Below, one piece after another: positions 54 to 63,099 of a DNA stretch of 64,000 bases. Numbering within the stretch: the first letter of the stretch is position 1; the number at the start of each line of letters is the position of its first letter. The position numbers and the translations under genes are program-made. The notes under the pieces were generated by a model, which searched no databases, was not told where the DNA came from, and worked only from the letters and a program-made list of their open reading frames with translations. This DNA comes from Stylophora pistillata (Eukaryota), in NCBI RefSeq assembly GCF_002571385.2, contig NW_019217895.1:235821-299820 (forward strand), given 5' to 3'.

Positions 54-430
54 TCAGACGAAGAAATTGCGACAACCATTTCGGAAGGATTGAAGTGATT
101 TTGCTTGCCGCAATTCAGGGGACAAGCTATTCCAGATAACCGCACCGTTATAGCTAAAGCTATTTTTCAGGAAATTGGTGCGGGGCAATGGAACAGCTAG
201 TTTGTTTTCAGAGTTCCTTAGATTATATGGAGGATCATATTTAGTGAAAAGAGAACCAAGATAGTCGGGCGCAAGACCATGTATAGATTTATAGACCATG
301 GTGGCCACTTGTATTTGTCGCTGAGTATCTAACCGTCTCCAGTTAAGTTGCACAAAAAGAGGATCAGCGCTTGTGTCATAACTGGAGAAGGTCAGAATAC
401 GGGCAGCCCGGTTTTGCAACTTTTGGAGCT
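54..430 (-). mobile_element. 5'-truncated LINE (CR1/L2-like) fragment, C-terminal end of the RT-containing ORF2
   Basis: The ORF reads QNRAARILT...LNWRRL...MVYKSIHGLAPDYL...LPRTNFLKNSFSYNGAVIWNSL, the typical post-RT C-terminus of CR1/L2-group ORF2. It breaks off at about 430 into a MITE fragment. Confidence 0.85.
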
Positions 431-49467: not shown

Positions 49468-50646
49468 ATGCTTACTAAAATATCGAAAAGGAGACCTTAC
49501 AGTCCAACTAATTTTAGGGAGAGATACACAGTTACATGTGCGATGAATTCAAGCAGGGTGGACGACAACATTTTCCCACCTGAATGGAGCGTCTACCAAG
49601 CAGTGGGAGGGAAGCTATCCGATTTTGGTGCCCAAGCTAAAAACTTTCTTATCTTTCTCGTAATCACCAACATCATCACCTCTCCTCTTACTGCGACTCT
49701 CAACATGTTGGTGATTATAGCTGTGAAAACTAAAAGCCGCTTGAAAGCCAAGAAGTCCAACATACTGCTTGCATGTTTAGCGGTGACCGATTTGGCGGTG
49801 GGTGTGATTGTTCAACCGATGTTAATTGTGGTTTCAATCATCGACTTGATCAGCGAACTAACGAGAGGGTTATGTTTCTTACAGATTTGTACACAATTTA
49901 TGACAAGTGTCCTGTGTAACTCGTCTCTTATCCACCTGACTTTGGTGAGTGGAGAACGATATTTAACCATAAAACACGTTTACGCCTATGCTAACGGACT
50001 CGTCACAGAGGTCCGCTTGCTGGTTGCCTTAAGTGTTGCGCGGCTCCTTTCCATAACACTGCACATTCCTCTTTTTGATTATAGATCAGCCTTTTATGTT
50101 ACAAACAACATTTTCATCGGAATTTCTGTCGCCATAGTAGCTTTCTGCCATGCAACAGTCTACCGCGAGGTTAGCAGACAGCAAAAGACACTTTCAACTC
50201 AAGAAGTCACAGAAGAGATAAGGCAGAAATTTCTGAAAGACAAGGAGGCTCTCAAACTGACATCTACAATTATTGTAGTACTTTTTCTCTGTTACTTGCC
50301 AATAACCGTTGTTAGAATTGTTTTAAGCCGGTCAGGTTTCATGTCTATAAAAGCAAGGTTTATAATTTTAATCTTTTCAGTGTCGTTTGCACTATTCAAC
50401 TCTTTCCTTAATCCACTAATTTACGCCATTAGGACACGACAATTTCGCGTAGCTTTTATCGAATTATCGTGTAGAACTGCAAACTTAGTTGAAGCTCAGG
50501 AAATTGAGAGGAGAATGTTTGGATCGCCAAATGCTGTGGAAGTAATAAACATAGAAGAAAAACAGGAAGAAGAACATCAAAATGAAGAACATCAAACTGA
50601 AGAACATCAAAATGATAAAATGAAGGACAGCAAATCTCAAACCTGA
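49468..50646 (+). CDS. Intronless rhodopsin-family (class A) GPCR, orphan, of the expanded cnidarian amine/adenosine-receptor-like type
   Basis: Seven hydrophobic segments with TM1 LN, TM2 LAVTD, TM3 ERY, TM6 CYLP, TM7 NSFLNPLIY and helix 8 QFRVAF. The true start may be the second Met (MNSS, 49543). Confidence 0.92.
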   Translation: MLTKISKRRPYSPTNFRERYTVTCAMNSSRVDDNIFPPEWSVYQAVGGKLSDFGAQAKNFLIFLVITNIITSPLTATLNMLVIIAVKTKSRLKAKKSNILLACLAVTDLAVGVIVQPMLIVVSIIDLISELTRGLCFLQICTQFMTSVLCNSSLIHLTLVSGERYLTIKHVYAYANGLVTEVRLLVALSVARLLSITLHIPLFDYRSAFYVTNNIFIGISVAIVAFCHATVYREVSRQQKTLSTQEVTEEIRQKFLKDKEALKLTSTIIVVLFLCYLPITVVRIVLSRSGFMSIKARFIILIFSVSFALFNSFLNPLIYAIRTRQFRVAFIELSCRTANLVEAQEIERRMFGSPNAVEVINIEEKQEEEHQNEEHQTEEHQNDKMKDSKSQT

Positions 50647-55533: not shown

Positions 55534-56842
55534 CAAATGACCTTTATTTATACAGGATAATATTTTACCGCTCCAAGCAGGTGGGGCTGTGTGAAAAAAG
55601 AAAGGAAAATTACACTTTACGTAAAAATTACGTAAAAATAACCTAAAGTAAAAAAGAAATAGACAATGTATATATTATACTTATAAGTGAAAAAAAAAAT
55701 CAGTGTGTGTAAAGTGATCAATGGAAACGGAGAGTAGGTCAAATTTGAATTTTGTTTAAGTATCCTCTGGTGAGTAGGTGTTTTTTCAGAGAATTGAGCG
55801 AGCGTCCAACTTATTGTTCATTGTGGAAAACTGTGTTTCGTAACACAGTAGCCTGCTGAGCATATCCACCAAGTGATATGCCCTAACTCAAAAAAAGAAA
55901 AAAATTATCAAAGGAATTTTTCATGTCTCTAAATGCTCTATCACAACATTTCAATACAAATTGTTATTTTCAGCGATTCGATTGTTTTCTTTGTCTTCTT
56001 TTCTAAGAAAGAACGACAGTTTGTACCAAGTGATTATACATCTTCCGGTTGTTCCCAGAAATTTAGATTTTGTTGATGTAAGTAGATCTATTCTTGGCAT
56101 TTGCTCACGCAATACATGACGCACGACGAATAAAAAATAATTTTTACTTTCTTCACGTGATCAAAAAAGGATTGTGAAATGACATGAAACTAATAGCATA
56201 AGATGCCTATTTTTGCCCATTGCATCAGTTTTCGGTTTAAGGGTTGGGAGTTCGATTAGTATGTCGCATTAAAAATTTAATATTCATCTTTTCTTGGAAT
56301 TTTCCCTTGTTCTATTGTTTACATATCGATTTCTAAAAAGTTAATATTGTTGGGTTGTTAAAGAAATTGTCAATTCGAAAGGTCAGTGATAATGTTGTTA
56401 GTTTTCTATGCTTCAAAATAAAGAGAAGTATCTGTCAGAACATCGCAGAAATTGTATTTAATTGAATAAATGATGCATTTACATTGCGCATTCTCCTTAT
56501 CAATATACTCTAGTTCCCTTTACAACACTTTGCGGCGGGGACTTTGGCCAGACTGCATCGAGCAGTTTACAATTTCGCAGAAAATTAAAAAGCATCGCTT
56601 TTCCATTGCACAGTGTTACATTCTATCGAAGTACATAAAGTTTTTGTTGAATTTAGAAAGCTTGTATACAGAATGGATAAATTGAAAAGCGGGCGTAAAA
56701 TTACGATTTGCTCTTTGACAAGTTATTATGGCACCACGTTTTGTACTAAATAGTCTACATTACACAGGCCTCATTCTACGGCTAAAGACACTTCATACCT
56801 TGAAGGCAACCTTGATTTCTAGCTAGTAGTTCCAAGATGCGT

Positions 56843-57250
56843 TTAAAAAACGTTCATCATTTGGAAGTAGAAAAATCCTTGAGCAGCCATGGCGTCCACA
56901 ACCGGTCGATCTGGAACTTGTGCGCGGACTTCGAGTACAGCCACGGAACTTTCGCGAACAAAAGGTGCTTGTGGTGCCTGTGAATTCCTACAAACCACGA
57001 GTTTCCCTGTATCTTTATCAAATTCTAACCTCTCCTGCGCCGAATCGTCTGGGCGTCGATTGCTGTAGTTAACTGGCTGCTGCTGTGTCGTAACGGTCGT
57101 AGCGGAACGTTCTTGCGAGGAACCGTCTCGGCGTCGATTGGTGTAGTTGACTGGCTGATGGCTTGCACTGGCACTTCCCTCCGTACGCTGTGAACTTTCA
57201 AATCCGGAGTCTGCTAGTCTCCTAGGTGGAAACTTCTGTCTGTCTTCCAT
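56843..57250 (-). CDS. 135-aa putative precursor/modifier peptide B ('GFF-motif' peptide) with an internal 26-aa duplication
   Basis: Paralog of 54222-54584 with the same three conserved blocks. Internal repeat QPVNYTNRRRDGSSQER / QPVNYSNRRPDDSAQER. Confidence 0.8.
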   Translation of the reverse strand: MEDRQKFPPRRLADSGFESSQRTEGSASASHQPVNYTNRRRDGSSQERSATTVTTQQQPVNYSNRRPDDSAQERLEFDKDTGKLVVCRNSQAPQAPFVRESSVAVLEVRAQVPDRPVVDAMAAQGFFYFQMMNVF

Positions 57251-57386
57251 TGAGAATCTTCAGAAGCAAGAAGTGCTATATTTGAGAACGTACAGAGGCA
57301 CACTGAGTCCTAGACCACTTTGTTGTTTTAACGTAAGCAAGATGTGAAAGCGGAAATCTCTACGCATGCGTATTTACGTCGACATA

Positions 57387-57395
57387 TTCCTAGAA
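57387..57395. promoter_or_regulatory. GAS/STAT-like site TTCCTAGAA upstream of peptide B
   Basis: TTCN3GAA 137 bp upstream of the ATG, with equivalents upstream of both JAB genes. Confidence 0.45.
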
Positions 57396-58365
57396 CTGTT
57401 TATTTTCTTTTAAAGTGCAACTCATTTAAATATCCACACAGACTTTTTCAGGCTTTTTGATGCCTCACCGTGTTGCATCCAGGCTGGATTTAAAAGCCCA
57501 TTCTCTGGCGAATTGTGAGAATTTTCACGATAAGAAACGATTTGAATACGCCGGACAAATGTCTAATTTATCACCCCAAAATATCATACGAGTATATCGC
57601 AATTCTTGAGAATGTTTATGTTTTCTTTCAAGAATAAACAATTTGTGCTATTCATTGCCAGAGAAAACGTCTTTCTAATCCTTATCATTTTCTTTAATCT
57701 AAATTTCGCTTGTAAATGAAAATAGTTATTACTTTTCTCAGAGGGGGAACGACAGAAATGCTTTATGACTAGATTCCTACAACTTATTCAACTCATTTAA
57801 GTTTTCACTCGTTTTAGAGTGGAAAGCGGTCAGTCGGGTAGTACTGACTAATTACCAAGAAGCGAAATTTTACTACTAACTCCTACCAACATAAAGGCTC
57901 GGTGTATCCAGCATTGCACTTAAACTTGAAAAAAATTTTCATCGGTAGCCACGACCATTTCGTTGAAGGAGACCAGCCGAACATCTTATAAGTAGATTTC
58001 TACAATTTATAGCAGTTTTCATTCGTTTTCGAAGGCAAAACGGTCAATCGGGCAGCACTGACTAATATCCCAGGAGCAAAATTCTACTCTTAACTGTTAT
58101 GACAACCAAGAAGACATAGCGGTTGGGAATGACTAAAGACGCCAGGGAAGATCGGCATATGAAGTGCTACACATTCTTGAAACAAACCTTTTCGCAGATA
58201 GCCAACGACCAAATAAGTAACGGCCGTCTATCATTTATTTTCAACGGTATCAATGAGGCTACCTTATGCTATATATTGTCAATTGTAAAAATTCTTCTTA
58301 GCTGGTGTCTTGTTAATTTCAGAGAAATTCATTTGTACACAAAATGCTGAAATAGCCATACTGAT

Positions 58366-59571
58366 CTATTTGGGGGAAAATTGTTTGTGTTGTTCAAAGG
58401 TTGGACTGCCACGAGTAAGGGGATCATCAACATCTATCTTCTTAATATTTCTTTCTTCTTCTTCTTTACTTTCATCATTCACTTTTTGGATGAACACCTT
58501 TCTGCTAGGGAGAAATTCCATTTCAAGTTGCAAAGTTGCGGATCCTTTTTTAATAAGGTATGGATGGATAGCAACCACTTTATCCTGTATCTTAGAAACT
58601 AGGACTAAAAGACCTCCACCAGGATACTCTCGCCGCATTCCGCACAAGTCTTCCTCAGATGGTCCACCTGTCTCCCCTGTTTTGAGAATGTATTTTCCAA
58701 TATTCTCTAAAGGGTAACCTGGAGCCAAGTTATCTCTGGTTTGCATGGTAGCTGTGGGCTGTTTGTGTGAGGAAAGAGGCTGCAGTTCTTTTCCATTTTT
58801 TTTCTTGGGTTCTAGAACCAGATGCAAGACAGGCATGCCGTGACTCGTCCACAACCCAAGCAATTCACCTTCCATTTCATTCCCATCAGAGAGAGACAGC
58901 CTATTTTCAATCATCTGTTTGTCACCTTCAAACATGTAAGCACATGCTTTCCTGTCGTAAGTTTCTTTATTAGGCGATTTTTCCACTTTTCGATATTGAG
59001 GGGTTCTCATGTGTACATGGGCAGTGGTGCTTCGATCTTCGTCTTTCTTAATATATTCGTTAATGACATCTATTTTCCTGAAGGGGCTACAAGAACTGCC
59101 AAGTGGGCTAATTTCACCCCTTTCGTAAGTAGTCTGCCCTTGTCTGTAAAGGTAAGGCGAAAGTGTGACCTCCCCGCTCGACAAAATATTAGCAATGATC
59201 AGGATAAACCCACGCGCTCCTCTAGGAAAGTTCCGAATGACGGTCGAAGAATCTCCCGTGCTCGGCTCTGATAAACGCAATTTGTGGTGGGAATGCCATT
59301 CTCCGATGTGACAGAGCAGAAACTGCTCCGTCAGCAACCGTCCAACACGCTCCAAGTAGGGAATGCTCTGGTAGAACGATACTTCTGTGCGAGCGCAGCC
59401 AACTGCAGGACCAAGCACGACGTGCAAAACTGGTTCTTCATTGTTATTCCACAAACCAAACAGATTTCCACCAGTTTCCTTCGCCGGATGAAGCTTCACT
59501 AAATCCTTCATCAGTTGAATGTCTTCCTCGTACATATGCACTTGAAATTGCCTCCCGTGTGTTGTCCCCAT
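58366..59571 (-). CDS. Tandem JAB/MPN protein 1: N-terminal active JAMM domain plus C-terminal degenerate copy; intronless CDS
   Basis: Domain 1: ETGGNLFGLW...HIGEWHSHHKLRLSEPSTGD (E...HxH...SxxD). Domain 2: EMEGELLGLWTSHGMPVLHLVL...NIGKYILK...PSEED, lacking both Zn-binding His. Confidence 0.9.
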   Translation of the reverse strand: MGTTHGRQFQVHMYEEDIQLMKDLVKLHPAKETGGNLFGLWNNNEEPVLHVVLGPAVGCARTEVSFYQSIPYLERVGRLLTEQFLLCHIGEWHSHHKLRLSEPSTGDSSTVIRNFPRGARGFILIIANILSSGEVTLSPYLYRQGQTTYERGEISPLGSSCSPFRKIDVINEYIKKDEDRSTTAHVHMRTPQYRKVEKSPNKETYDRKACAYMFEGDKQMIENRLSLSDGNEMEGELLGLWTSHGMPVLHLVLEPKKKNGKELQPLSSHKQPTATMQTRDNLAPGYPLENIGKYILKTGETGGPSEEDLCGMRREYPGGGLLVLVSKIQDKVVAIHPYLIKKGSATLQLEMEFLPSRKVFIQKVNDESKEEEERNIKKIDVDDPLTRGSPTFEQHKQFSPK

Positions 59572-59688
59572 CTTTGGTCGGTTAATCTAAGGTTCAAGCC
59601 GAAGTAGAACTTTAGCCGACACCAAAGTTATAACCAACAATTAAGTTTAGTTGCGTTACAAACCGTAGACCTCACTTCATCTGAATAC

Positions 59689-59697
59689 TTCCGAGAA
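59689..59697. promoter_or_regulatory. GAS/STAT-like site TTCCGAGAA upstream of JAB gene 1
   Basis: TTCN3GAA 118 bp upstream of the ATG. Confidence 0.45.
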
Positions 59698-60374
59698 ACG
59701 TTGTTCTTAAAATAACCCAAACTGTGGATATCTAGTACATTTGCGGTTATAAGTATTTACTCCAAATGAGTTGTATAACATGTGTCAACTTACTCTCTTT
59801 GGCATATATATTTAGAGGGCGAGGATGTGCAAAATATTACCTTCAAACAATTAAAAGTGCGAGTTCTAGTGTAGTGACAGCTGGTGGGTTTTAGTTTTAT
59901 TCCGGCTTTTCTTAGAAATGTTTGTTTTATTCGTGTCACGCAGGTCACAGCGAAGATACAATATCCGCTTCTGAGAAAATCGATGAGCTGGAAAGTATTG
60001 CCAGCATTATTCTCAATTAGAAAAAACCGCTATGGCGTTACTGTTACCAGAAATGAAAGAGCAAGAGTGTAAATTGATATTCATGCTTGTTAACCATCGG
60101 CAAAACGGAAGACGATTACTTAACAGCTATAAAACTCGCAAGAAAAACGTTATTATGGTTCTCGTTTTGTGTAGCTTTATAGCGAGCATTTAGTAAAATT
60201 TTCAAAACCGGATTAATTACTGGAAAGCGAATGATTTTTTTAAATAAACTTTGTGCAAAGATTCATGATTACACTGAAGGAGTAGGCAAATGGTGCTGGT
60301 GAACAAAGTATTTTTTATTTCTTTAATTCGATTTAAGATTAAACACACCTAATCGATTTTGAATTAAATTTTTG

Positions 60375-60376
<2 letters not shown>

Positions 60377-60407
<31 letters not shown>
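60377..60407. repeat. (AT)n microsatellite
   Basis: Directly visible. Confidence 0.95.
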
Positions 60408-60411
<4 letters not shown>

Positions 60412-60808
60412 TGCATTGTTTTTCATTCTTACATCTAATAAAATGATTTTACACTAAAACTACAGTATATGGAAAGATTGCTTATGAAAATAAGAAAGAT
60501 AAATTCCCGAACGGCAGACGAAATACTTTTTTGTGACTATTATTTTCTCAATGACTATCAGTGTCGTCTTTTACATAAGACACTATCCCTCCGAAAGTGA
60601 CAAATAAAATGAACTGAGAATGATATGGTCTGAATATTATGTCTTCCGAAAGCAAAAAGAAGTTTCTTTCCCTCCATGAGTATTCAAATAGCTGCCCTTC
60701 AGTGGCTCGGAGCAAAGCACGTTTGATGTCCCTCTGCTCTATGTTACTTATGACCAGTTTTACATTTGAAAATGCTTATCGTTACATTTGAATTCCGTCG
60801 TTGCAGAT

Positions 60809-62143
60809 TCACCTCCAGGGTAGTTGGGCACTGGATGGACTTCGCACCCCTCCATTTGGTGCTTGGGGAGTAACCTTTAAGAAATTTGACCCCGAGGACC
60901 TTTTTAAAAAGGGGCTGTAAGAGGATTGCAGAGGACTAAGGCTACTTGTAGCTCTTGGATAACGTGAGTGTTCCCTGACTTCACTTCCCTTCTCCTTTTG
61001 GTATTTTATCTTCTCGATCTTGTTAAAGGGATTCTCATTGCGAAGACCCTGTACTGTTCCCGCTTTATCAAAGCTATATGTGGATCTCTCAGTGTAAAGA
61101 TACGGGGATAATCTCACAGAACCATACGACTCGATGTTGCCAATGATCAGAAGAAAGCCCTGTGTCCCTCGAGGGTAGTTTCTTATCACAGTCGTCGAAT
61201 CGCCTTGGCTTGGTTGGAAAAGTCGCAGCTGATGATGTGAGTGCCATTCTCCAATGTGGCATAACAAGTAGTCTTGAGTAAGAAGGTTGCCGTTTCTTTG
61301 CAGATAGGGAATATCTTGATAAAAGGAGGCGCCAGTCCGTTTGCAATTCTGACCTGGCCCCAGAGCGATATGTATGACTGCGTCACCATTAGTGGTCCAC
61401 AAACCAAACAGGTCTCCTCCAGTCTCTAGATGAGGATATGCAAGAATGTACTTTTCTATCCTCTCGATGTCTTCTTCAAACATAAATACCTTGAAATCAC
61501 GAGATGAGCTCCGCTGGTAGCCAGAAGAAAAGAACGTGCTTCTCTGCTGTATACCTCCTTTATCCAAATTTCTTGGAAAAGCTTCACCTGCATGAGTAAT
61601 TTCACCGTAGGGATCTTTTTGGAGATATGAAGAGCTGGGGTAAACTTCGGAGGTAGACCATTCCATTTCTTCCTCCACCTCAAAACCCTCGTTCAAACGA
61701 CTGCCTGTGTCGATTTCTCTAAATGGGCTTTCAGTTTTCAGAACTTCAACGTCGAGGGCTTTTGGAGAACCTCTCTTCAAGTTGACGATGAATAGCCGAA
61801 GCGTGACTTCTTGTCCTGAACGTTTGAGACTGACTGTCGTTTCAAGAAATTTACCTTCTGTATTATGACTGCAGTTTTTAACGTCTCTCTGACTTCTTCG
61901 TGTGCTAAGTCGCTTTAAAGAATAGCCATAATACCAATCACCGATATGCGAAAGCGAAAGATCCTTTCCAACTTCGCAGGAATGCTCTCTTGAAACGATG
62001 TGGATTACAGGTTCGCCATCGGTTGTCCACAAACCAAATAGATTTCCACTTAGTGCCTCTGGCTTAGTATTGGAAGGAACAAGCTTCTCAAAGACATCAT
62101 ATTCGCTCTGGAATATATAAACCCTCTTCTTCGAAGCAGCCAT
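60809..62143 (-). CDS. Tandem JAB/MPN protein 2: N-terminal degenerate copy plus C-terminal active JAMM domain; intronless CDS
   Basis: Domain 1: ALSGNLFGLWTTDGEPVIHIV...HIGDWYYGY (HxH replaced by YxG). Domain 2: ETGGDLFGLWTTNGDAVIHIALGPG...HIGEWHSHHQLRLFQPSQGD. An acceptor-like tctttctctaaacag lies just before the ATG. Confidence 0.9.
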   Translation of the reverse strand: MAASKKRVYIFQSEYDVFEKLVPSNTKPEALSGNLFGLWTTDGEPVIHIVSREHSCEVGKDLSLSHIGDWYYGYSLKRLSTRRSQRDVKNCSHNTEGKFLETTVSLKRSGQEVTLRLFIVNLKRGSPKALDVEVLKTESPFREIDTGSRLNEGFEVEEEMEWSTSEVYPSSSYLQKDPYGEITHAGEAFPRNLDKGGIQQRSTFFSSGYQRSSSRDFKVFMFEEDIERIEKYILAYPHLETGGDLFGLWTTNGDAVIHIALGPGQNCKRTGASFYQDIPYLQRNGNLLTQDYLLCHIGEWHSHHQLRLFQPSQGDSTTVIRNYPRGTQGFLLIIGNIESYGSVRLSPYLYTERSTYSFDKAGTVQGLRNENPFNKIEKIKYQKEKGSEVREHSRYPRATSSLSPLQSSYSPFLKRSSGSNFLKVTPQAPNGGVRSPSSAQLPWR

Positions 62144-62262
62144 ACCTGTTTAGAGAAAGAGAACGCTAAATCACGGAGTCGAGAAAGGACGCCGTTGAGC
62201 TTTGTTTACGGAATGGTGTCTGTTTAACAACCTCTTCACTCATGCGCAACGAGTCAATTGAT

Positions 62263-62276
62263 TTCTGGGAATTTCG
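62263..62276. promoter_or_regulatory. GAS/STAT-like site TTCTGGGAA overlapping a kappaB-like GGGAATTTCG, upstream of JAB gene 2
   Basis: TTCN3GAA 120 bp upstream of the ATG; its reverse complement is TTCCCAGAA. Confidence 0.45.
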
Positions 62277-63099
62277 ATGCTATTTGCATTTCAGTTAATC
62301 TGGGTCCGTGGCCGTGGTCCTAAAACCACTTTCAGTAAGAATTATTTTCAATATATGGACAGTAGTTACTAGATGAAACTTAAAGGAATAAATTGTGTTG
62401 ACGATTATGACAGTCATTCGTGACCTTTTACCCTAAATTCGTCAGTACATCTTTCACAACTCTAATTTAGTTTGTAACGTGGGAATCATTAAATATTCTG
62501 TTTTTCGAAACTATACATATTGGTTTCGAAGTCGACATGTCCTTAGTTGTTCAATTCATTGAAAGCATCAATAATTTCCTTTGTCACGTAAAACTCTCAG
62601 AGATCCATTTGGCAAGCGGTGTCGTGACATTCAACTTTTACATGTCTACCGATTTTTCGTTGAAAGGTTGAAATAGCCCGTTTGCAATATATACAATATA
62701 TACCGTTTGCAATATATATATACGAATGACAGGGGAAGGAAAGCCCTTTAATGAATTTAACCTTTTTCCTCAACAGGGTACGAGTTTTATAAATTGTTAC
62801 TCATAATTTGCAGATTTAGTAATCAAAGGTCACAGATAATGGCTTAGATTAACTATTCTGCTATTGCGACGAGGCTCACATGGCTTGAGTAATTATCTAT
62901 CTTCGTCGCAGCTGTTTTTCAGACTTGATCCTAAATTATCTTCTTTCATAGACACTATCCAGCCTCTAAGACGGTTTTAATCTAAGTATTGCGTTCGATA
63001 TGTTGGACTGGACGCGTCTGTAAATCTAAACCATGCCTACGTCACAGCGTTGGAAACAAAAAGATTCAAATTTACCAAATTATTCTTAGCGTTCATGAA

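Follow-up and report, generated by a model that had tools for sequence, protein, structure and literature searches.

Pairing between catalytic (MPN+) and non-catalytic (MPN−) domains recurrently controls the JAMM deubiquitinases, as in the proteasome lid, the COP9 signalosome and the BRCC36 isopeptidase complex (BRISC), and has been studied between separate subunits. Rpn11/Rpn8 and BRCC36/Abraxas are eukaryotic MPN+/MPN− heterodimers, and complexes of the BRCC36-Abraxas type are 2:2 assemblies. In bacteria, operons of the Bil type and related ones carry a separate E1, E2, JAB peptidase and small modifier. Within the COP9 signalosome, CSN5 has no activity by itself; the MPN− subunit CSN6 pairs with it, switches it on and also raises the affinity for Nedd8 (PMC4140821). 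In CBASS, the antiphage system that signals through cyclic oligonucleotides, Cap3 is a JAB isopeptidase that cuts cGAS at its C-terminus and undoes the conjugation carried out by Cap2 (PMC10097602). The subject of this report is a pair of neighbouring genes, A and B, in a stretch of 64,000 nucleotides from the stony coral Stylophora pistillata (assembly GCF_002571385.2, contig NW_019217895.1, positions 235,821 to 299,820 of the forward strand), the whole of which is referred to as the window. Each gene encodes an active and a dead JAB domain in a single chain, and the two genes do so in opposite order.

The reading favoured here, and given an even chance, is that A and B are Cap3-like isopeptidases of a bacterial-type conjugation system that carry their MPN− partner in cis. 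What appears to be new is MPN+/MPN− logic within one chain, and in a prokaryote-type JAB lineage of animals. Exact-phrase searches of the main text of open-access papers returned no tandem MPN, JAB or JAMM proteins and no pseudo-MPN proteins, and open-access text searched for Cap2 or Cap3 together with coral, or for JAB or CBASS together with cnidarian or metazoan, returned no literature on this family.

Two tandem JAB genes in opposite domain order

The two genes and their domains, in window coordinates, are as follows.

58366-59571, minus strand: gene A, intronless open reading frame (ORF) of 401 amino acids, active JAB followed by dead JAB ('Ad' type)
59092-59559, minus strand: active JAB/MPN+ domain of A, residues 5-160, ETGG...HSH...S..D, with a PADLOC match
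58513-58959, minus strand: dead JAB-like domain of A, residues 205-353, NIGKYILK where the active half reads HIGEWHSH
60809-62143, minus strand: gene B, intronless ORF of 444 amino acids, dead JAB followed by active JAB ('dA' type)
61694-62140, minus strand: dead JAB-like domain of B, residues 2-150, HIGDWYYGY, carrying an internal deletion particular to its lineage
61034-61507, minus strand: active JAB/MPN+ domain of B, residues 213-370, with a PADLOC match and a match to PDB 9ild_A

A preliminary description of the locus had read A as active-dead and B as dead-active, and this opposite domain order was confirmed, with both ORFs on the minus strand at the positions listed. It had also called the two active domains very similar, and they prove to be identical at 98/189 positions (52%, E 6e-63; BLASTP, A 7-192 against B 215-397). 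The motifs that it quoted are present, namely LLCHIGEWHSHH... in the active halves, NIGKYILK in A and HIGDWYYGY in B, and the consensus of the active halves of A and B can be written ETGG(D/N)LFGLW ... LCHIGEWHSHH-x7-PS-x-GD. Both dead halves keep the scaffold G-x-L-x-GLWT...PV-x-H and, as described, have lost the zinc ligands in different ways, the two quoted motifs standing in their place. By BLASTP, identity between each dead half and the active halves is 26-30% (140-194 residues, E 1e-11 to 4e-15). The dead half of A is 26% identical to the active half of its own chain (E 3.7e-15), the corresponding value in B is 28% (E 8.8e-14), and the two dead halves share 34% identity over 58 residues (E 3.5e-7). 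Similarity among the halves of A and B is far above chance. No inverted repeat of at least 20 bases was found between the two genes.

The catalytic site of the active halves is intact throughout the family. The Glu of ETGG, both His, the Ser and the Asp are invariant in 99/99 active domains of non-redundant tandem proteins, a count that covers 99 of 100 representatives, the omitted one also having intact ligands (GAWHSHH); some active domains read GQW, GSW or GAW rather than GEW. The JAMM motif is thus represented by the catalytic Glu and the HxH/Ser/Asp set, with a spacer of 8 residues from HxH to Ser against 7 in H-x-H-x(7)-S-x-x-D, a difference that appears as a one-residue gap in the alignment to 9ild_A. 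Against the PADLOC JAB model PDLC00890, the active half of A scores E 6.2e-12 (profile positions 8-150 of 157) and that of B E 3.7e-12 (positions 5-153 of 157). The nearest NCBIfam models are 6A-MBL cap2_3 and ICE_VC0181. The active half of B matches PDB 9ild_A, annotated 'Peptidase' (E 9.5e-4), which the active-domain profile alone also reaches at E ~1e-3; profiles of full-length A and B returned nothing useful from PDB. No dedicated Pfam family covers proteins of the A/B type, and the relatives P0200 and P0202 exceed the Pfam Prok-JAB cut-off with 42.9 and 44.4 bits. As judged from these profiles, the active halves are related to the Cap3/ICE_VC0181 family, below equivalog-level membership.

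Both genes are represented in sequencing runs. The stretch is contained in 20 public runs, and four of these, from four studies, were compared over 56700-62600. The run data are assembled contigs, in which strand, transcript ends and levels are unreadable, and only run X14 (polyA RNA) is certainly RNA. A is covered by 58287-59883 in X1, 57945-59702 in X2 and 56700-59870 in X6, and by three contigs in X14 (56700-59098, 59118-59473 and 59457-59676); B is covered by 60419-62304 in X1, 60421-62204 in X2 and 60457-62276 in X14, and each gene is covered in 4/4 runs. No joints were reported in the contigs, and none falls inside either ORF, while the stretch between the genes is thin or empty (zero depth at 59852-60245 in X2, and in parts in X14 and X6). 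Since the contigs fall into two gene-sized pieces with a hole between them, the data fit two separate unspliced mRNAs. A single spliced gene comprising A and B was rejected on the absence of joints and the separate contigs, and a hidden upstream exon for A is unlikely, as the open frame extends to 406 amino acids against the 401 of the ORF and there are no joints.

At E <=1e-3, homologues number 636 proteins for B and 281 for A. Among the best 120 of the 636 and the best 120 of the 281, full-length A orthologues are 44-70% identical, and all named homologues are scleractinian proteins annotated 'uncharacterized' or 'hypothetical', from Orbicella, Oculina, Stylophora, Desmophyllum and Pocillopora; Acropora and Montipora members, added through cluster look-ups, are annotated likewise. 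A scan of 200 sequences (198 retrieved homologues plus A and B) with the active-domain model gave 108 of dA type, 61 of Ad type, 27 with two dead domains ahead of an active one ('ddA') and 4 that are single-domain or fragments. The reading frame is intact in all 196 tandem sequences, and the dead halves are present in the orthologues, that is in all 61 Ad, 108 dA and 27 ddA sequences, from Acropora and Montipora to Pocillopora and Orbicella. Ad was found in Montipora and Pocillopora and dA in Acropora, Orbicella and Oculina, and both orders therefore occur in both major stony coral clades, Complexa and Robusta, which have retained the two forms since a remote time.

The two types also stand side by side. 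In metagenome contigs, 6/7 dA genes with at least 2.5 kb of downstream sequence are followed by an Ad gene on the same strand, and 7/8 Ad genes with at least 2.5 kb upstream have a dA gene there, counts in which several loci are near-duplicates that amount to some five distinct versions. B lies upstream of A in the window, the same dA-then-Ad order, and the Oculina dA and Ad genes have consecutive locus tags (G018986 and G018987). In one locus, L039, a dA gene is followed by another dA gene.

Further relatives occur in the same genome. A 652-amino-acid dead-dead-active paralogue (L002:1279-3237, minus strand, contig C2626) is identical to an NCBI Stylophora pistillata protein, and some ddA proteins, such as P0047, have a pair of dead domains that nearly duplicate one another. 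Contig C293 (L004-L006, L009, L010, L012 and L014) carries a second JAB gene cluster, with proteins of 587-616 amino acids in which an N-terminal active JAB precedes a low-complexity tail of ~450 residues rich in Lys, Glu and Ser, and with a dead JAB encoded on its own (GEWRSVSQYS) that has a divergent ORF as its neighbour (L009/L014). An origin of A and B as transposable elements was rejected, with only 15 matches in the 398-Mb genome.

Homology, constraint and history of the dead halves

Profile alignment of dead against active domains gave hhalign probabilities of 99.5-99.9 over 122-150 columns for the Ad-type, dA-type and first ddA dead domains. The dead domain of Ad aligned to its active counterpart with probability 99.8 over 142 columns and that of dA with 99.9 over 128 columns; the second dead domain of ddA aligned to the Ad and dA active halves over just 77-78 columns. 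In addition, the first dead domain of the ddA paralogue matches the PADLOC JAB model (E 8.6e-5, profile positions 5-138 of 157), and a protein atlas gives VC0181/Prok-JAB look-alikes for the dead half from an Orbicella orthologue (score 0.91), which is taken as a lead only. At the level of the alignments, the dead halves are shown to be full-length homologues of the active halves, and they are likely to adopt an MPN fold, with the dead half of B as the case for which this prediction is least certain.

Loss of the metal site is thorough and follows two patterns. The first His is retained in 0/29 Ad-type, 3/58 dA-type and 0/24 ddA dead domains, the zinc His pair is never retained together in one dead domain among 99 tandem proteins, and the Asp column is largely substituted or deleted. 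Several Gly and Trp positions are nevertheless invariant across every dead domain (29 Ad and 58 dA representatives), and the replacements at the metal site are themselves conserved, IGKYIL in the 29 Ad types and IG.W.Y in the 58 dA types. In Ad dead domains the Ser/Asp helix survives as a P-[ST]-x-E-[ED] remnant, together with G-K-Y, and dA dead domains keep G-x-W and often the preceding His, their Ser/Asp segment being gone. By these residues the two dead lineages have decayed in different ways.

Selection was estimated from 16 Ad and 27 dA genes aligned by codon (the window genes plus metagenome loci, identical sequences removed). The ratio of nonsynonymous to synonymous substitution (dN/dS) is the median of pairwise Nei-Gojobori (NG86) estimates on ORFs derived from metagenomes, many pairs of which share branches. 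Pairs with dS outside 0.03-1.2 were excluded (72/120 Ad pairs and 285/351 dA pairs), and partitions with <30 codons or dS <=0.02 were dropped. For Ad (48 pairs), dN/dS was 0.19 in the active half, 0.35 in the dead half (46 usable pairs), 0.55 in the linker and 0.77 in the tail; for dA (66 pairs), the values were 0.18, 0.43, 0.60 and 0.46. The dead halves do not evolve neutrally, as dN/dS is <1 in 46/46 Ad and 66/66 dA pairs and, among disjoint pairs, in 7/7 and 10/10 (17/17 together). Because this holds in all usable and all disjoint pairs, the dead halves are constrained, under purifying selection about half as strong as that on the active halves. The linkers between the halves, of 45-90 residues, evolve fast. 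Between the window and other corals, synonymous sites are saturated (dS 1.4 to >3), and homology is nonetheless detectable. A second Stylophora haplotype, seen in runs X14 and X6, differs by 14 substitutions in the A and B ORFs, 9/14 of them nonsynonymous and 0 in the active halves, and includes a 9-base in-frame insertion allele in A (window 58527-58534, residue 349). These differences are a sign of relaxed, not absent, constraint.

How the dead domains arose was addressed with a quick maximum-likelihood domain tree of 96 rows (86 domains and 10 single-domain outgroups), sampled by hand from 39 of the 99 tandem proteins. The preliminary description had proposed an internal duplication followed by independent loss of opposite active sites. 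The grouping of domains by position that goes with this history is not rejected by the approximately unbiased (AU) test (likelihood difference 0.13, p 0.50). In the unconstrained tree every dead domain falls on a single branch (SH-aLRT, an approximate likelihood ratio test, 97), with the active halves of Ad and those of dA on two further branches, a topology that would point instead to a single ancient dead domain and its shuffling at a later time. The AU test likewise does not reject a separate, Ad-specific duplication (likelihood difference 3.7, p 0.43). The tree is without power among the three histories, and long-branch attraction of the dead domains is a live concern. End branches of dead and active domains measure 0.53 and 0.14 in A and 0.26 and 0.073 in B. 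In the wider family, 7/135 representatives from an active-domain search have two active halves, 74-97% identical. P0204, a 529-amino-acid member of the single-domain subfamily whose halves are 82% identical and whose second half reads GKWRFHR instead of GEWHSHH, is by its motifs a recent active/dead tandem. Judging from the seven double-active tandems and P0204, duplication followed by loss of ligands is a real route in the wider family, and the recurrence of tandem copies there fits a domain that works as a pair.

Conjugation-type genes around A and B

Further genes of interest lie within the window downstream of A and beyond the window end upstream of B. The window occupies positions 235821-299820 of its contig, C112, and features with an L prefix are given in the coordinates of the named locus.

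L094:3953-5242 (C112:303773-305062), minus strand as A and B: intronless ThiF-type E1 of 429 amino acids (Pfam ThiF 1e-34, PADLOC E1-E2 1.4e-31)
L094:6905-7579, minus strand: single-domain active JAB, 224 amino acids
L094:8869-9723, minus strand: single-domain active JAB, 284 amino acids
L095:755-1201, plus strand, divergent from the single-domain JABs: E2-like ORF, 148 amino acids (PADLOC E2 8.5e-5)
56843-57250, minus strand: small ORF, 135 amino acids, ending ...DRPVVDAMAAQGFF plus 8 residues, with an RNA-library contig at 56700-57620
54222-54584, minus strand: small ORF, 120 amino acids, paralogue of the 135-amino-acid ORF (52% identity over residues 51-134)

The E1 ORF is 5.8 kb from B, with its PADLOC E1-E2 match lying 4.4 kb past the window end, and the E2-like ORF, which has a Cys in an E2-like 'EICHF' context, is ~12.6 kb from B. 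With E1, E2-like and further JAB genes 6-13 kb away, A and B are recast as parts of a conjugation system. The association recurs in other loci: in L040 a dA gene has an E1 orthologue (84% identity) 3 kb upstream, L036 has the order E1 3' end, small ORF, dA, Ad, small ORF, and E2 orthologues adjoin single-domain JAB genes in a divergent arrangement in L086, L087, L089 and L091.

The small proteins accompany the tandem genes as well. In seven loci (L018, L019, L025, L036, L050, L051 and L052) the Ad gene is followed ~1.2 kb downstream, on the same strand, by a homologue of the 135-amino-acid ORF, with a second downstream copy in L018 and L052, and homologues stand upstream of dA in other loci. 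Their conserved part ends DR[PQ]V[VI][DE]-x-M-x-x-x-G-[FW]-F, both window proteins ending ...DRPVVD-x-MA-x-QGFF, and the tail past G[F/W]F is 2-9 residues in homologues with printed ends and longer in L043 and L040. Both window ORFs share an 'FD-x-x-TGKL-x-V' motif with a 198-amino-acid ORF past the E2 gene (L095:2522-3118, minus strand), in which FD..TGKL occurs twice. No known family was matched by these small coral proteins. The 135-amino-acid protein is a candidate substrate or modifier, and the E1, E2-like ORF, JABs and small proteins together match the components expected of a ubiquitin-like conjugation system of bacterial type.

Several other features were noted nearby or elsewhere. A second E2-like and E1 pair lies on contig C332 (L096:1413-1877 and L096:3805-5103, both plus strand), sharing 55% and 63% identity with the counterparts on C112; the search of the coral's own genome for JAB genes gave no match on that contig. 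An intronless ORF of 392 amino acids for a rhodopsin-family G-protein-coupled receptor (window 49468-50646, plus strand; Pfam 7tm_1, E 3e-21) is ~3.6 kb from the nearer small ORF. ORFs resembling the tails of retroelement proteins, neither with a Pfam match, are found at window 54-419 (minus strand) and L094:1347-1976 (plus strand), the latter adjoining an N stretch between B and the E1 gene.

Mechanism, alternatives and comparison with known systems

In the favoured reading, an originally dimeric JAB would have been fused into one chain and one of its sites retired. The active half would act on a protein that is conjugated or a precursor, cutting at its C-terminus as Cap3 cuts cGAS, and the dead half would serve as a built-in, non-catalytic MPN− partner that positions or activates it or adds substrate affinity, as CSN6 does for CSN5. 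The two halves may pair in the manner of Rpn11 and Rpn8. A natural single-chain pair in both orders would offer a simple model for the contribution of a dead partner, which could be cut, swapped, restored or removed. Furthermore, because they belong to a conserved cluster with E1- and E2-type genes that appear closest to bacterial anti-phage conjugation modules, the tandem proteins may be the deconjugating arm of an undescribed animal pathway with bacterial roots.

Several observations count against this interpretation. Among the active halves, Pfam Prok-JAB scores are 15.5 bits (A) and 13.2 bits (B) against a cut-off of 25, and TIGR02256 (ICE_VC0181) scores are 23.8 and 26.3 bits against a curated cut-off of 127.6. 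Among the dead halves, those of A and B searched alone against Pfam and PADLOC matched 0 families, and that of B lacks ~24 alignment columns between the third strand-like block 'VIHIV' and 'SHIGDW', among them the part corresponding to a conserved helix-like stretch of the active halves; the deletion is common to the nearest relative, P0003, and in part to P0017-type sequences, and is absent from most dA orthologues. Constraint on the dead halves (0.35-0.43) is just modestly tighter than on the linkers (0.55-0.60), and 6/8 haplotype differences within them change an amino acid (4/4 in A and 2/4 in B). As to the neighbourhood, the E2 assignment is weak (20.6 bits, with no PDB match), the E1 match is to generic ThiF (among solved structures the nearest are UBA5, ThiF and MccB, and Cap2 is reached only at 2e-5), the PADLOC E1-E2 model also matches 11/14 control genomes, and adjacency in corals may merely reflect slow genome rearrangement. 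Unlike in CBASS, no CD-NTase was identified beside the coral genes, although no search aimed at a CD-NTase or effector was made on this contig.

The best-placed competing explanation, itself improbable, is that the dead halves are independent readers or decoys, which would bind the modifier or its conjugates, be it the small G[F/W]F proteins or tagged targets, with no contact to the active half, and would thereby recruit, sequester or compete instead of activating. The dead halves keep the N-terminal 'YxF..D...GxLxGLWT...PVxH' block with the metal site replaced by other conserved residues, and the long, fast-evolving linkers, the 27/200 ddA proteins with two dead copies ahead of one active and the stand-alone dead JAB ORFs of the same genome (L009/L014) all agree with independence. 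However, known MPN− domains mostly partner MPN+ domains (PMC4140821). The long linker, moreover, would equally permit pairing within the chain.

A somewhat weaker candidate has A and B forming a hetero-oligomer of four MPN domains through their dead or active halves, by analogy with the 2:2 BRCC36-Abraxas complex, which would explain why the genes have stayed adjacent. Same-strand adjacency in 6/7 and 7/8 cases, the consecutive Oculina tags, coverage of both genes in the same 4/4 runs and the retention of both orders in both major coral clades speak for it. Adjacency alone, though, is weak evidence in slowly rearranging coral genomes, the dA gene of L039 is followed by another dA, and the contigs give no co-expression levels.

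That the dead halves are functionless, decaying leftovers of internal duplications, carried in frame with an essential active half, is highly improbable: they do change at roughly double the rate of the active halves, contain indels (the deletion in B, the 9-base insertion at residue 349 of A) and, with the rest of the sequence outside the active halves, hold 14/14 haplotype differences, but neutral decay is disfavoured by the selection data, with dN/dS <1 in every usable and disjoint pair, and the Gly, Trp and other residues that stay invariant in 29 and 58 representatives, the homology detectable despite saturated dS and the frame intact in 196/196 tandem sequences also stand against it.

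The favoured reading of A and B as Cap3-like enzymes with a cis partner can be extended, more tentatively and with the balance of probability against it, to a complete coral conjugation pathway. This would comprise a ThiF-like E1, a small E2, Cap3-like JABs and G[F/W]F modifiers or substrates, with the MPN+/MPN− dimer hard-wired into single chains at least twice, in mirror order, and the dead half used for substrate recognition. If true, A and B would be two specialised enzymes, for example one that matures a precursor tail and one that removes conjugates. They would also represent the first single-chain MPN+/MPN− enzyme, and the animal system would be directly comparable with CBASS Cap2/Cap3.

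Set beside the described systems, the coral locus combines features of three. Like Bil-type operons, its neighbourhood has a separate E1, a separate E2, one or more JABs and small proteins; it differs from them in that the small proteins match no family, in its multiple JAB paralogues, including active/dead tandems, and in its eukaryotic host. As in CSN5/CSN6, a domain competent to bind zinc occurs together with a ligand-less member of its own family, whereas in the coral chains, in contrast to CSN5/CSN6, Rpn11/Rpn8 and BRCC36/Abraxas, both are part of one polypeptide and come in either order. Unlike the lid, COP9 signalosome and BRISC families, the coral domains appear to derive from the prokaryote-type JAB lineage, and ddA versions exist. 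The likeness to CBASS Cap3 and VC0181 lies in the active halves, which match PADLOC JAB, cap2_3 and ICE_VC0181 and have the E...HxH...S..D ligands, and in the E1/E2-type genes nearby. The coral proteins are set apart from Cap3/VC0181 by an animal host with one gene per transcript, by an HxH-Ser spacer one residue longer with an extra invariant 'LCH' and a third His, and by active halves that miss the curated family cut-offs, and the coral E1 and E2 are separate genes, unlike the Cap2 fusion. Finally, the coral JAB is fused to a dead copy of the same domain, an arrangement not described for Cap3 in the literature consulted.

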